A stretch of DNA of 64,000 bases, from sequence record PP496443.1; one strand, 5' to 3'. The notes under the pieces were generated by a model. The model made no database searches. It had not been told where the DNA came from and worked only from the letters and a program-made list of their open reading frames with translations. This document shows, in pieces, positions 11,829-16,488 of the stretch. Numbering within the stretch: the first letter of the stretch is position 1; every line of letters begins with the position of its first letter. The position numbers and the translations under genes are program-made.

Positions 11829-12119
11829 TTACTCGACCGATACTTTGACGAAGGTTACGTCTTCGTATTCCCGCAGTCGCTTGGTGAAGGACTCTGCAAC
11901 TTCGGCCAACGGCACGAAGATCATGTCGCGGGCCACGGTCTCTACTGCGAAGAAAGACGCATCGGTGCGCACGTATACGCGATTGACCGCTGATTTCGAG
12001 GACGACTCATCTTCGCACTCCGTACACACGGCAGTCGAAGATCGGAGCGTGATGGTATACGACTTCGTGCCTTCCGGCTCAGGCCCTTGACTACTTCCTA
12101 CCTCTTGGGTATCACTCAT
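11829..12119 (-). CDS. Hypothetical protein
   Basis: 96 aa ORF overlapping the recA stop codon. Confidence 0.7.
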   Translation of the reverse strand: MSDTQEVGSSQGPEPEGTKSYTITLRSSTAVCTECEDESSSKSAVNRVYVRTDASFFAVETVARDMIFVPLAEVAESFTKRLREYEDVTFVKVSVE

Positions 12120-13668
12120 CTTCTACTTCCTCTTCTTCCTCATCCAGACCAGCGCCGGACAAGTGGTTGAAATACAACTCCAGGCCACGGCCCGAAGAAA
12201 TCTGTGCGGCCAGCACTTCACGGATGTCGAAATCTTTCACTTCCCATTCCGCCGTCAGCTCCTTGCGGGCCTTGCCTTTGAACAGGACCAGTTGTTTCAG
12301 ATCCTCCCACGTCAAGTCCAGCTCAGGGATAGACTTGCTGTCGGCATGCAGCGTGAAAGACTTCATGTTGCCGGACAGCTGACCAGTCATACGCAGGTAG
12401 TACCACGTATCCCAGACCGGATCGAAGCCACGACCTTTACCACTGGCGTCGCTGATCCACAAGCGCTGCCAGATTTCAAGGTTGTCAACCCCGTACTTGT
12501 TCTTGATCGCCTTCATATTGATGAAGCGATAAGTGTCTGTACCGGACGCGCCTACGCTTGGCTCTTCCATCGTGGCGCCAGTGGCCGAGATGAAGTCCGG
12601 GCAAGCGCGAGGGGTTTGCATGATCCGTGCACCGGTGGCGTGTTTGATCGCCATGCCGCCAGGTTCATAGTTCGGGTTACCCATTCGCATGCCCGGATTC
12701 TGACGGATCTGGTTGATCGACACCACGGTCGCCATTTTCTTCCGCAGTCGGCCCCACACCTTCTTGATGTGCTTGGAGTGCATACGTGCATCCAGAGCCA
12801 TACCCCGGCTACCGTCACCGTCTTCCCCTTCGTCTTCCTCGGTGGTCATCGAGGCAATGGAGTCGAGCAGGATCAGACACTGCATCATGCCGCCGTTGGG
12901 CGACTTCATCCGCAGCTTGCCTTTGTAGACGGTGTACTTGCCCTTGAACTTGCTCATGTTCTCTTTGGTGCGGTCATACAGCAGATACCACTCGCCGTTG
13001 ATATGCACCTTGTCGGGCAGCTTTTTCAGGATCGACGACATCACCTTGTAGAACTTCTCGCCCGACGATTCGTTGTAGTAACGAACGCGAGGTGGGACTA
13101 CGTAGTTGCCTTTATCGTCCTTCACGCCGAACATACGCTTCATGCTGATCTTGATGCCTTGGGCTTCGAGCATGTTGACGATGTAGTCTTCGGCACCGGT
13201 GTTCTCATAGTCCCACCAAAAGGACATTGGAACGCCAGCCAAACAGATGGAACCCAACCACGACATCAGGTTGGTGGACTTGCCCGAACCTTCCGGCCCC
13301 GAGAAGTTATACCAGCCGCCGGGATAGATACCACCCGCCAGCATCAGGTCGGTGCACAGCATCCCCGTGGACACTCGCCCTTCCCGGAGGATCTCCAAGT
13401 CCGATACACCTTGGACGATGTTGAAGTGTTCCTCCACCTCGTCGATCATGGCAGTGACGCCCATCATCTCAAGTATTTCGTCTACCATGTCTTCGCGAGA
13501 CTTGGGTGGCGCTTCAACCTTTGCAGCGGCTGCTTTGTTGGCCCCACGCTTGGCGGGTACCTTGGCGTCCTCGATCAGCTTTTCCGCAAGTGCGCTGACC
13601 TTTTTCTTGGTTGCTACCGTCGCAGTCTTGACGGGTTTAGCTTTAGCTCTGGTAATGGCTGCTGCCAT
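12112..13668 (-). CDS. recA: RecA/UvsX-like recombinase
   Basis: STGMLCTDLMLAGGIYPG, Walker A GPEGSGKST, Walker B LILLDSIASM, INQIR and PGGMAIKH (RecA NQxR and GGxAxK motifs). Start reassigned to ATG 13668. Confidence 0.92.
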   Translation of the reverse strand: MAAAITRAKAKPVKTATVATKKKVSALAEKLIEDAKVPAKRGANKAAAAKVEAPPKSREDMVDEILEMMGVTAMIDEVEEHFNIVQGVSDLEILREGRVSTGMLCTDLMLAGGIYPGGWYNFSGPEGSGKSTNLMSWLGSICLAGVPMSFWWDYENTGAEDYIVNMLEAQGIKISMKRMFGVKDDKGNYVVPPRVRYYNESSGEKFYKVMSSILKKLPDKVHINGEWYLLYDRTKENMSKFKGKYTVYKGKLRMKSPNGGMMQCLILLDSIASMTTEEDEGEDGDGSRGMALDARMHSKHIKKVWGRLRKKMATVVSINQIRQNPGMRMGNPNYEPGGMAIKHATGARIMQTPRACPDFISATGATMEEPSVGASGTDTYRFINMKAIKNKYGVDNLEIWQRLWISDASGKGRGFDPVWDTWYYLRMTGQLSGNMKSFTLHADSKSIPELDLTWEDLKQLVLFKGKARKELTAEWEVKDFDIREVLAAQISSGRGLELYFNHLSGAGLDEEEEEVEDE

Positions 13669-13690
13669 GGAGATGTACCTGCGTCGTAAA

Positions 13691-13732
13691 TAAAAATGGG
13701 GCACCGACCAGCGAACCGGCAGATGCCCCATT
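13691..13732 (-). terminator. Rho-independent terminator
   Basis: AATGGGGCA/TGCCCCATT stem with TTTTTA on the minus strand. It lies downstream of the in-frame extension at 13749-13925. Confidence 0.7.
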
Positions 13733-13748
13733 AGGGTTGCGCAACAGA

Positions 13749-13925
13749 TCACTTACGTGACTTGCGACGCTTCGCTTTGACCGTACTCACCGCCTTGAAG
13801 CCGGGCTTATTGTAGTCCGGTCTGGCATCGGCGGCGAGGTTGAACAACCCCCCGCTGCTAGGGTCAAAGCCTTTGGCGGATCGGCCCTTCGGCTTACCGC
13901 CGCCGGACTTACCGCCGGCCTGCAG
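13749..13925 (-). CDS. Candidate stop-codon readthrough extension (58 aa, Gly/Lys/Arg-rich) of the acidic protein
   Basis: In frame directly after TGA 13926-13928: LQAGGKSGGGKPKGRSAKGFDPSSGGLFNLAADARPDYNKPGFKAVSTVKAKRRKSRK*. It has no ATG or RBS of its own, and its codon choice looks coding. Confidence 0.55.
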   Translation of the reverse strand: MQAGGKSGGGKPKGRSAKGFDPSSGGLFNLAADARPDYNKPGFKAVSTVKAKRRKSRK

Positions 13926-14732
13926 TCACTCGATGTCGAGTTCGATCTTCAGCTTTTTGGCCGCTTTGACGATCTTGTCCTTGCCCGCTTCGACAACTTT
14001 CTCGACGATGGCGTCGGTGTCGTCCTTGCGGCCGATGGTGATCTTCAGCGCTTTGGCCAGCGACTTCAGTTCGTCTTCGTCCAGCTCTTCGAGGGCGTCT
14101 TGGAGTTCTTCTTCCTCCTCTTCTTCCTCCTCGTTTTCTTCTTCCTCTTCTTCGCCGTCGCCCAGTTCGATTTCCAGCTCTTCAGCTGCGTCACGAACGT
14201 CGTCTTCGTCTTCTTCGAGGATCAGCGCGATGATCGCGTCTTCGTCGTCTTTCTTGCCGACTTTGATTTCCAGCTCTTTGGCCAGCGCTTTGAGGTCTTT
14301 CAGGGAAAGTTCACCGAGTTCGGCTTCGAGGTCGCCTTCCTCTTTTTCGTCTTCTTCCTCCTCCTCCTCCTCGTTTTCTTCCTCCTCCTCTTCTTCGGAT
14401 TCCTCCAGTTCGAGGTCGATGTCCAACGCGTCGGCCGCGTCTTCGATGTCCGACTGGGACGCCGCTTCGGCCAGCGCTTCGGCCATGGCTTCTTCGTCAG
14501 CGCCCTTGGCGAACTTGACCTTCAGCTTCTTGCCCAGCTGTTTCAGCTCGTCTTCGTCCAGATCGGCCAGTGCTTCGATCAGCGCTTCCTTGTCGTCGCC
14601 CTTGTCACCGCCGCCTTCTTCGTCCAGCTCTTCCGCCAGTTCGGCGATTTCGGCGAATGCTGCCTTGGCCTTTTTGTCCTTGGTCGCTTCTGCTGCTGCT
14701 TCGGCCAGTTCGATGATTTTTTCAACAGACAT
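13926..14732 (-). CDS. Highly acidic protein with three Rho-N/HeH-like helical repeats separated by poly-Glu linkers
   Basis: LADLDEDELKQLGKKLKV..., LGELSLKDLKALAKELEI..., LEELDEDELKSLAKALKI...; strongly biased codons; GAGGA RBS. Confidence 0.8.
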   Translation of the reverse strand: MSVEKIIELAEAAAEATKDKKAKAAFAEIAELAEELDEEGGGDKGDDKEALIEALADLDEDELKQLGKKLKVKFAKGADEEAMAEALAEAASQSDIEDAADALDIDLELEESEEEEEEENEEEEEEEDEKEEGDLEAELGELSLKDLKALAKELEIKVGKKDDEDAIIALILEEDEDDVRDAAEELEIELGDGEEEEEENEEEEEEEEELQDALEELDEDELKSLAKALKITIGRKDDTDAIVEKVVEAGKDKIVKAAKKLKIELDIE

Positions 14733-14830
14733 GGTACATCCTCTTTACGGGTAGGGTGCCAACTAAGGCTCTTTAATCAACGGGGCGCCGTTTGGCTCAC
14801 CCCGTTATACGAATGATTTACAGCGGTCTT

Positions 14831-15919
14831 TCAGCGACGACTTGAACGCGAGGATCTTGTCGAAGTTTTCTCTTTGTCGCGGCTGGTACGGCTGCTGCGT
14901 TCCGACCGGCTCGACGTTGATTTACCGGACTTCTCCGGCTTATCCGCTTTGGCTTTGGTCTTCTCGCGGCGGGAAGTACGCTCGGGCTTCTCTTCACGGC
15001 TGCTGCTACGCTTGCTGCCTCGCAGTGGACGATCCGATTCACGCTTTCGCTTGCTGCCCCGGTCGAGATCCTTACCGGCTTTCCCTTCTTCTTCCTCGAC
15101 GTCCTCAGCATCAGGAGCCTTGGATTCCAAACTTGCCACTTCCTTTACAGCATCTGCGTAGGACATTGGCTGGTCGAGATTACCGAGGATGTCCCACTGC
15201 AGATACTTCTGCTCGGTACGGGACAGCGGAGTATGGCCTGTGCTGGAATCCAGCTGCACGTCATACATGTCCGACGCCGACTTCGCGTCTTTATCGTAGG
15301 ACACCAGAATGTCACGACCGAACTCGGGATCACCCAGCGGCATGATCTGCACGCCCTGCTTGGTTTTCACCTTGTTGGTGTCTTCCAGCTTCTTGATCTT
15401 GCCAGCGATACGGTCAGTAACCCGCATTACGCGAACCGGGGTCCACGAGGCGCTGTTGATGTTGTCCACGAAGCCGGTCTTCTTCTCGTTGGCCGAGTGC
15501 TCGGGGACACGCTTCGGCTCGCTGTCTTGCAGTTCCCGCACGATGACCGGTACGTAGTAGTACTTCTTGGTCTGCTTGGGGTTGCTGATTTCGGCGAACG
15601 GGCAGTCAATGGTGGTGTCGAAGGTATCCGCGTCCCGGTCGAAGTTCAACGGGGTATGCGAGATATCGAACTCACCCTTCGGCGTAACGATCTTGATCGA
15701 GTACACCACATCTGGAATCGGATCACCGACGATACGCACAGCGATGAAAGCACCACCTGGCGGGTATTCGATCATCTTCACTTTCTTGTTGAAGTACACC
15801 CGCTTGCCGCCGGTCTGGCCAGCATTGGTCGCACCGAAACCTTTACGAGCTGGGGCAGCACCAACGCTACCACCTCCGCCAGTACGGCTACGACCGGTTC
15901 TTGCACTGTCACGTGCCAT
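14831..15919 (-). CDS. gp32-like single-stranded DNA-binding protein with a basic Arg/Ser-rich tail
   Basis: CPF...KKYYYVPVIVR, VRVMRVT...I..KI, LGDPEFGRDILVSYD, MYDV and TPLS follow the T4 gp32-type SSB pattern; located next to recA. Confidence 0.65.
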   Translation of the reverse strand: MARDSARTGRSRTGGGGSVGAAPARKGFGATNAGQTGGKRVYFNKKVKMIEYPPGGAFIAVRIVGDPIPDVVYSIKIVTPKGEFDISHTPLNFDRDADTFDTTIDCPFAEISNPKQTKKYYYVPVIVRELQDSEPKRVPEHSANEKKTGFVDNINSASWTPVRVMRVTDRIAGKIKKLEDTNKVKTKQGVQIMPLGDPEFGRDILVSYDKDAKSASDMYDVQLDSSTGHTPLSRTEQKYLQWDILGNLDQPMSYADAVKEVASLESKAPDAEDVEEEEGKAGKDLDRGSKRKRESDRPLRGSKRSSSREEKPERTSRREKTKAKADKPEKSGKSTSSRSERSSRTSRDKEKTSTRSSRSSRR

Positions 15920-15978
15920 GGGACATCCTCTTTCGGTTAGCTTACATCCCGTATTTACAGGATCTGATTTGGGGTGGA

Positions 15979-16488
15979 TTATTTCGGATCTGAAACTGGC
16001 TGCATGTCCATTAATTTACCGGACACCAGCACGAACATCTCCAGAAAAGCGCGGGTAACCACGTTCTTCTTACGCTGGGACTCTTGAATCCGCAGCATGG
16101 AGTTGAAGGTGGCCAGCCGCAACGATGCCGAGGCGCTAAGCGCTGCATCGAAATACTCGGTCAGAGCCATTCCTTCCAGAACCTTGAAAGGAACCCCGGT
16201 AGTCTTCCAATCAACGGGTAGGACCACGGAGTCTGCGTCGCCGTTATAATTAGGCCACCCCGGCTTGCCCAGGCTTGGAACGTATACCGAATCCTTATCC
16301 AGACCGGACTTACCAATCTCGGATAGCACGCGGTCCACCTGCATGTCGAACCACGCCCGTAGCGTAGAATCCATGGCCTCGAACTGGGCAAGACTCATAG
16401 TGGACAGGATCACCGGGGTCAGTACTGTCTCGTTCGTGAACACCGGCAGTTCTTTATCGAACGGTGAGCTCTCGTCGTTACTGAGCAT
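15979..16488 (-). CDS. Hypothetical protein
   Basis: 169 aa ORF overlapping the upstream gene's stop. Confidence 0.7.
   Translation of the reverse strand: MLSNDESSPFDKELPVFTNETVLTPVILSTMSLAQFEAMDSTLRAWFDMQVDRVLSEIGKSGLDKDSVYVPSLGKPGWPNYNGDADSVVLPVDWKTTGVPFKVLEGMALTEYFDAALSASASLRLATFNSMLRIQESQRKKNVVTRAFLEMFVLVSGKLMDMQPVSDPK

Follow-up and report, generated by a model that had tools for sequence, protein, structure and literature searches.

Does the UGA that closes the annotated frame of an acidic jumbo-phage protein always end translation, or do some ribosomes pass it and add a basic tail? The question is raised by gene Lauda_00095, which lies in the 64,000-nucleotide stretch of DNA analysed here (the window) from record PP496443.1, the 201,030-bp double-stranded DNA (dsDNA) genome of the Pseudomonas putida jumbo phage vB_PpuM-Lauda; window coordinates equal record coordinates minus 62,000. 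The gene occupies 13926..14732 on the minus strand, a range that includes the UGA (13926..13928), and encodes 268 amino acids, of which 40% are Asp or Glu, with three helical modules that poly-Glu linkers separate. Past the UGA, the same frame remains open for 58 sense codons (13752..13925, minus strand; 5% Asp+Glu and 26% Lys+Arg) before it reaches a second UGA (13749..13751). A preliminary description of this DNA, made from its letters alone, had proposed that the first UGA is leaky and that two isoforms are made. The comparative data reported below support this interpretation, since the UGA and the frame are conserved and the substitutions are biased towards synonymous changes. As judged from sequence comparison, programmed UGA readthrough that yields a minor isoform with a basic tail is the probable explanation of the locus.

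The basic observations in Lauda were confirmed. The 58 in-frame codons lie where the preliminary description had placed them and have the translation it quoted, the stop context is UGA-CUG with C as the +4 base, and the extension fills the gap up to an intrinsic-terminator-like hairpin with a T-run (about 13692..13730, minus strand), which lies just after the second UGA and not after the internal one. None of the 11 GenBank records annotates the segment. An open stretch of this length is by itself not beyond chance, as at least 58 open codons follow the stop in 33 of 194 Lauda open reading frames (ORFs), mostly because the next gene shares the frame; the case therefore rests on comparison with relatives. 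The use of preferred codons in the extension, also claimed previously, was evaluated with a frame-specific codon model trained on Lauda's long ORFs, and the score was gene-like: 0.456 bit/codon, compared to means of 0.469 for windows of real genes and -0.78 for off-frame windows. The two other frames of the extension scored -0.6 and -1.2 bit/codon, only 0.3% of off-frame windows outscored the extension, and its G+C content at third codon positions (GC3) was 0.76. No family match to the extension was found in Pfam, PHROGs, a PDB sequence search or Foldseek. A search of the 58-residue tail against 1.84 billion protein representatives returned no fused or stand-alone homologue, with low sensitivity for so short a query; two matches were not accepted, one to a 2,368-amino-acid protein for which there was no matched stretch and the other a chance match to a repeat protein.

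Positions 12100-16000 of the window match Lauda at 100% identity, and eight sister phages isolated on P. putida are 93.6-98.9% identical over this region. Together they form the 'G3' jumbo myoviruses of the CEPEST collection, in a paper from which recoding is absent (PMC7616413). All nine Lauda-group genomes retain the internal TGA, the open frame after it and the terminal stop. Within the group the extension is 99% identical, with 6 synonymous and 4 amino-acid changes, and between Lauda and Peetri nucleotide identity is higher in the extension (93.9%) than in the acidic body (86.1%). The terminal UGA is followed by U in Lauda, and an in-frame TAA lies five codons past it (13731-13751, minus strand) in all nine sister phages. 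Since the terminal UGA of Pori-4 and Aura is followed by C, this back-up TAA may matter.

Direct searches with the acidic protein and its tail are hampered by low complexity or short length, and more distant relatives were therefore approached from the downstream neighbour, the UvsX-like recombinase Lauda_00094 (12112..13668, minus strand): UvsX homologues were collected, and the gene upstream of each was inspected. Four relatives with the arrangement were found, namely an ENA metagenome scaffold (L012), the Vibrio coralliilyticus phages vB_VcorM_GR7B (L013) and vB_VcorM_GR11A (L019), and a Logan contig (L023), whose UvsX proteins are 48-53% identical to that of Lauda. In each of them, the DNA directly upstream of the recombinase gene contains an acidic gene, a TGA, a homologous in-frame extension (79 codons in L012, 44 in GR7B, 50 in GR11A and 41 in L023) and, some 60-80 nt ahead of where the recombinase gene starts, a terminator-like hairpin followed by a T-run. 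Their acidic proteins have the same repeated helical module as that of Lauda. The preliminary description had named the alignment of orthologues as a check; in every relative that bears the segment, we found the UGA and an in-frame segment with synonymous-biased substitutions, and none has a sense codon at the stop or carries the segment out of frame.

The extensions are recognizably similar at the protein level (BLASTP E=8e-8 for Lauda and GR7B, 1e-6 for Lauda and L023, and 2e-4 for L012 and GR11A). In an alignment of six extension sequences, with columns in Lauda extension numbering, Gly-Gly at positions 25-26 and Ala at position 34 are invariant (6/6), position 27 is Leu in three sequences and Phe in three, and Pro at position 22, Phe at 28, Asn at 29 and Asp at 33 are each present in 5/6. 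This alignment and the pairwise BLASTP matches define a conserved core at codons 20-41 in Lauda (13803..13868, minus strand). Similarity begins 2-3 codons past the stop, and every extension terminates in a Lys/Arg-rich run; in Lauda, this polybasic end comprises codons 50-58 (13752..13778, minus strand), with Lys or Arg at 6 of 9 positions.

The five lineages that bear the extension group together in a neighbour-joining tree of UvsX (439 columns) as a single clade (bootstrap 88) with the topology (Lauda, L012) and (L023, (GR7B, GR11A)). Outside the clade the arrangement was not found. Contigs L024, L025 and L026, with UvsX 42-47% identical, have an acidic gene without the extension, and the recombinase starts within about 80-100 nt of its stop; in contig L022 the upstream gene ends in TAG, without a conserved extension. 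In the more distant jumbo phages PaBG, Dickeya JA13, HRDY3 and NCTB and in contigs L015, L016, L017 and L021, the SSB gene directly adjoins the recombinase gene. Searches for further relatives were negative: when 50,697 phage records were searched by tblastn with the extension and with the acidic protein, only the nine sister phages came up, a word-indexed protein search with the L012 acidic protein returned the query alone, and neither the IMG/VR scans (with UvsX, a UvsX alignment and an extension alignment) nor a scan of GTDB genomes added any. A metagenome scan gave only distant relatives in which an SSB-like gene directly adjoins the recombinase gene. The 18-protein UvsX alignment was too diverse for a locus search.

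If the segment is translated, it could be a separate small gene that is started by non-canonical initiation or by reinitiation after the UGA, with no fusion protein made. A start-type codon does precede the core in three lineages (GTG at codon 9 in GR7B, ATG at codon 11 in GR11A and TTG at codon 14 in L012), and Lauda has a CTG directly past the stop. However, these candidates differ in position from lineage to lineage, without an evident Shine-Dalgarno sequence, and the similarity between extensions extends upstream of them. The first codons past the stop in the five lineages (CTG, GCA, AAG, AAG and AAA) include no conserved start. L023 has no in-frame ATG, GTG or TTG in the whole extension, and Lauda has none before the conserved core; as had been noted previously, its extension lacks an in-frame ATG, and its TTG (codon 27) and GTG (codon 46) lie within or after the core. 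Internal initiation therefore cannot explain the conserved residues. Moreover, a separate gene would need neither the frame nor the TGA to be kept, gene callers never called one, and no such small protein was found among the 1.84 billion protein representatives searched. By its codons, the extension is without an initiation site of its own, and we consider a separate gene unlikely.

A second alternative is that the segment is not translated at all and is a conserved RNA or DNA element (a 3' untranslated region, a recombinase leader or a binding site) that is open by chance. It does lie in what annotators left as an intergenic region, it is nearly identical among the nine sister phages, and open stretches of its length are common in Lauda, as described above. 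The comparison of GR7B with GR11A argues otherwise. Over the 32 ungapped codons of the core and tail, the rate of non-synonymous substitution (dN) is 0.089 and that of synonymous substitution (dS) is 1.40, which gives a dN/dS of about 0.06; third positions hold 13 of the 20 differences. As a control, the +1 frame gave dN > dS. Nucleotide identity between these two phages is again higher in the extension (65.4%) than in the acidic body (55.0%). Across genera, conservation is seen at the protein level, whereas nucleotide similarity between the Pseudomonas and Vibrio phages was not found by BLAST; in addition, the codon usage is frame-specific and no conserved structure was detected. By this substitution pattern, the extension is evolving as a protein in this frame, and an untranslated element is very unlikely.

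The identity of the stops points in the same direction as programmed readthrough. The internal stop is TGA in all five lineages (in all nine Lauda-group phages, L012, GR7B, GR11A and L023) and is never UAA, UAG or a sense codon. In Lauda, UGA is an ordinary stop elsewhere, as had been claimed, and ends 76 of 194 long ORFs (39%); TGA accounts for 16% of stops in 50 kb of GR7B, 1/9 in L012, 2/10 at the GR11A locus and 0/7 in the other ORFs of L023. From the usage of each genome, the chance of TGA in all lineages is about 0.002. A single transition would suffice to change TGA to the preferred TAA. At its own end, the extension has TAA in L012, GR7B, GR11A and L023, doubled (TAA TAA) in GR7B and GR11A. 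With TGA at the junction and TAA at the end of the extension, a weak stop is thus kept at the junction and strong stops are kept at the true end. The +4 base in the five lineages is C, G, A, A and A, and never U. Of the stop codons, UGA is the one read through most readily; a +4A promotes misreading by tRNA-Trp in E. coli, and a +4U lowers readthrough (PMC5289835).

The preliminary description had also pointed to a hairpin of the form GCCGG-(8 nt)-CCGGC just after the stop. It is present in Lauda at 13902..13919 (minus strand), 6-7 nt past the UGA, but of the five lineages only the Lauda group and L012 possess it, so it is not a general requirement. The stem is 5 bp long in Lauda and 6 bp long in Peetri and L012, its offset from the stop is constant, and at two positions the Lauda group and L012 differ on both sides of the stem. 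Over six sequences, pairing is possible in 75% of cells compared to 64% in shuffles, and the observed value was reached in 9 of 500 shuffles; there is no hairpin at this place in GR7B or L023, and GR11A has a different one. In Lauda itself, the hairpin is outside the minimum-energy fold, and the folding z-score of the stretch is -0.42. It might act locally to enhance readthrough, or it might result from Ala and Gly codons that are reverse complements by chance.

A hairpin behind a UGA raises the possibility of selenocysteine insertion by host SelB, with the hairpin as a selenocysteine insertion sequence (SECIS). The strict conservation of the UGA and the compensatory changes in the hairpin of the Lauda group and L012 would fit this. 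Against it, a search of Rfam, SECIS families included, gave no match even at E<=10, the lineages share no fold, GR7B and L023 lack the hairpin, no orthologue has a Cys codon at the position of the UGA, and the flanks (an acidic end and a Gly/Lys-rich start) are unlike a redox site. We regard selenocysteine as highly improbable.

The UGA might also have arisen recently as a nonsense mutation, stem from faulty assembly or mark the decaying remnant of a once longer gene, which would be the default reading for a single genome; however, it is present in 13 independent assemblies whose UvsX identity goes down to about 48%, and the downstream protein has been kept although synonymous sites are saturated (dS 1.4), which leaves this explanation with scarcely any credibility. 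Recoding of UGA by a suppressor tRNA, genome-wide or late in infection, occurs in some large phages, but can be practically dismissed here, as ARAGORN found no tRNA gene in the whole 201-kb Lauda genome and the extension itself, like the 76 long ORFs mentioned above, ends at TGA. Frameshifting is ruled out because both parts are in the same frame, and transcriptional slippage because Lauda has no suitable homopolymer.

Under programmed readthrough, most ribosomes would terminate at the UGA and release the 268-residue acidic protein, while a minority would decode the UGA by a host near-cognate tRNA, continue for 58 codons and produce an isoform of 327 residues. By analogy with E. coli, the decoding tRNA would be tRNA-Trp. 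The added segment would consist of the conserved short peptide core and the polybasic end, and one may speculate that its role is to hold a sub-stoichiometric share of the acidic protein on nucleic acid or on some component of the SSB/UvsX recombination machinery. Several points weigh against readthrough. The comparative sample is small, with 13 genomes or contigs (nine Lauda-group phages, GR7B, GR11A and two metagenome contigs) that represent five lineages; since these form one UvsX clade, the arrangement arose once, and the five lineages attest retention rather than independent origins. Neither the +4 base nor the last sense codons before the stop are conserved. Many, though not all, cases of programmed readthrough have a stimulatory RNA structure downstream of the stop. 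Here RNAalifold found no structure common to the six sequences; with no such element present in every lineage, only the stop context would set the efficiency, which could therefore be low. Finally, a literature search turned up neither proteomics nor ribosome profiling for these phages.

What the tail might do can be approached from the protein that carries it. The preliminary description had called the acidic protein a Rho-N-repeat protein; this label did not hold, as no threshold was reached in Pfam, PHROGs, the PDB sequence search or Foldseek, and without a library assignment it is a visual resemblance only. The DNA-mimic or chaperone-like role that the description gave to the acidic form, and nucleic-acid binding by the tail, are inferences. 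Pfam gave hints below cut-off (Fan1_SAP, E=0.029, 14.8 bits compared to a cut-off of 27), PHROGs gave nothing for the Lauda protein, the PDB sequence search gave only unrelated coiled proteins at E>=0.005, and the best Foldseek match of its model in the PDB had E = 2. The AlphaFold model, built with a three-sequence alignment, has a mean predicted local distance difference test (pLDDT) score of 72 and predicts three modules of two to four helices with disordered poly-Glu linkers; the modules at residues 134-190 and 205-265 have a pLDDT of about 90. The word-indexed protein search, for which the Lauda acidic protein is too low in complexity, gave one distant analogue that shares its repeated helical module (P0001, 271 amino acids; L010 4001-5161 and L011 2659-3819). 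Its gene is on an unrelated, AT-rich, phage-like contig near ribonucleotide reductase genes, where it is followed by a separate Cys-rich ORF of 108 amino acids with its own GTG start, and not by a UGA and an extension.

The upstream neighbour of the acidic gene, SSB Lauda_00096 (14831..15919, minus strand), ends in a long basic tail rich in Ser, Arg and Lys. Comparison of this tail with those of the SSB homologues in L012 (2323-3420), GR7B (L013 2963-3958) and GR11A (L019 1534-2553) showed that the SSB proteins of the clade end in polybasic low-complexity tails with 31-42 Lys/Arg in the last 80 residues and without an acidic tip, whereas the SSB-like protein of the outgroup contig L021 has an acidic-aromatic tip. 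The composition of the SSB tail mirrors that of the extension end in the same genome: in Lauda both are rich in Ser and Arg, and in L012, GR7B and GR11A both are rich in Lys. Because the two ends are alike, we suggest that the tail could bring a minority of the acidic protein to the nucleic-acid or protein surface that SSB occupies. More specifically, a leaky UGA might fix a low ratio of a 'tethered' isoform, in which a docking core (Gly-Gly, then aromatic or aliphatic residues) and an SSB-like polybasic end anchor part of the otherwise strongly anionic, DNA-like protein to single-stranded DNA or to SSB/UvsX; we put this forward tentatively, as a possibility that we would not favour at present. 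If true, the protein would be a stoichiometry-controlled regulator of phage recombination, and its dose could follow the RF2 and tRNA status of the host.

Around these genes, the minus-strand order in the record is a sigma factor, two hypothetical genes, SSB, the acidic protein, a 257-nt unannotated gap and the UvsX-like recombinase, which agrees with the earlier placement of the acidic gene between SSB and recA. As a mechanical ORF (12112-13752, minus strand), the recombinase frame reaches an upstream GTG that overlaps the terminal stop of the extension and crosses the terminator; the annotated ATG at 13668 is the plausible start. A Ser-rich ORF of 304 codons (13840-14754, plus strand) antisense to the acidic gene is a mirror image of the runs of Glu codons and almost certainly no gene. 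In several recombinase homologues, intein or homing-endonuclease domains interrupt the protein (Pfam LAGLIDADG_3 and Intein_splicing; L023 453-3962 and proteins P0008, P0011 and P0014), and the L023 recombinase gene was split into two ORFs by the gene caller. Outside the window, Lauda has genes for QueC-like (two copies) and QueE-like proteins and GTP cyclohydrolase (PP496443.1 158254-160633 and 192820-196500), and GR7B has a TGT-domain gene near the sigma factor gene, which suggests a 7-deazaguanine-type DNA modification.

For RNA viruses and eukaryotes, programmed stop-codon readthrough has been documented well. The closest precedent for the Lauda locus is the A1 protein of phage Q-beta, in which a phage gene likewise has a leaky UGA followed by an in-frame extension without its own start. 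In that system, as in the case proposed here, two isoforms are made in a set ratio from one mRNA by near-cognate decoding in the host, with no elaborate downstream RNA structure. The two differ in that Q-beta is a small single-stranded RNA phage whose extended product is a structural protein of the virion and whose extension is a folded domain, whereas Lauda has a 200-kb dsDNA genome, its gene lies in an SSB/UvsX DNA-metabolism block, and its extension is a short and probably disordered basic peptide. Cellular readthrough extensions are known for MDH1 and for peroxisomal targeting in fungi and animals, where they depend on UGA-CU contexts. With these, the Lauda case shares a short UGA context in which the +4 base is not U, as well as a short extension with a linear motif that alters association (in Lauda, as proposed); unlike Lauda, they are eukaryotic, involve eRF1 and follow other context rules, and the Lauda motif is unrelated. 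Bacterial selenoprotein genes also have a conserved in-frame UGA and a nearby downstream hairpin, the latter found in two lineages of the Lauda clade, but the clade shows neither a conserved SECIS-like element nor a match in Rfam, and no orthologue has Cys.

Programmed -1 frameshifting is known from dsDNA phage genes, as in tail assembly chaperone pairs and the C-terminal capsid extensions of Listeria phages (reviewed in PMC5009743). There, as proposed for Lauda, recoding at the end of a gene gives some of the product molecules an additional C-terminal segment and is recognized by conservation of the downstream frame; however, -1 frameshifting changes the frame at a slippery site, whereas the two parts in Lauda are in the same frame with a stop between them and no slippery heptamer. 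That large recoding review treats recoding in dsDNA phages in terms of frameshifting (PMC5009743), and in the table of another, recent review, Q-beta A1 and one Bacillus gene are the only bacterial or phage examples of readthrough (PMC7026636). Our literature search, whose coverage was incomplete, found no report of readthrough for these or other jumbo phages.

If true, this would be, within the literature searched, the first case of conserved programmed readthrough to be reported for a dsDNA phage. It would also provide a clean natural bacterial example, spanning jumbo phages of Pseudomonas to Vibrio, that would be useful for learning which contexts make UGA leaky for RF2. It would mean that phage annotation pipelines miss real coding sequence, and it flags the uncharacterised acidic protein, whose gene lies between those of SSB and UvsX, as probably a component of phage recombination or replication with two isoforms.

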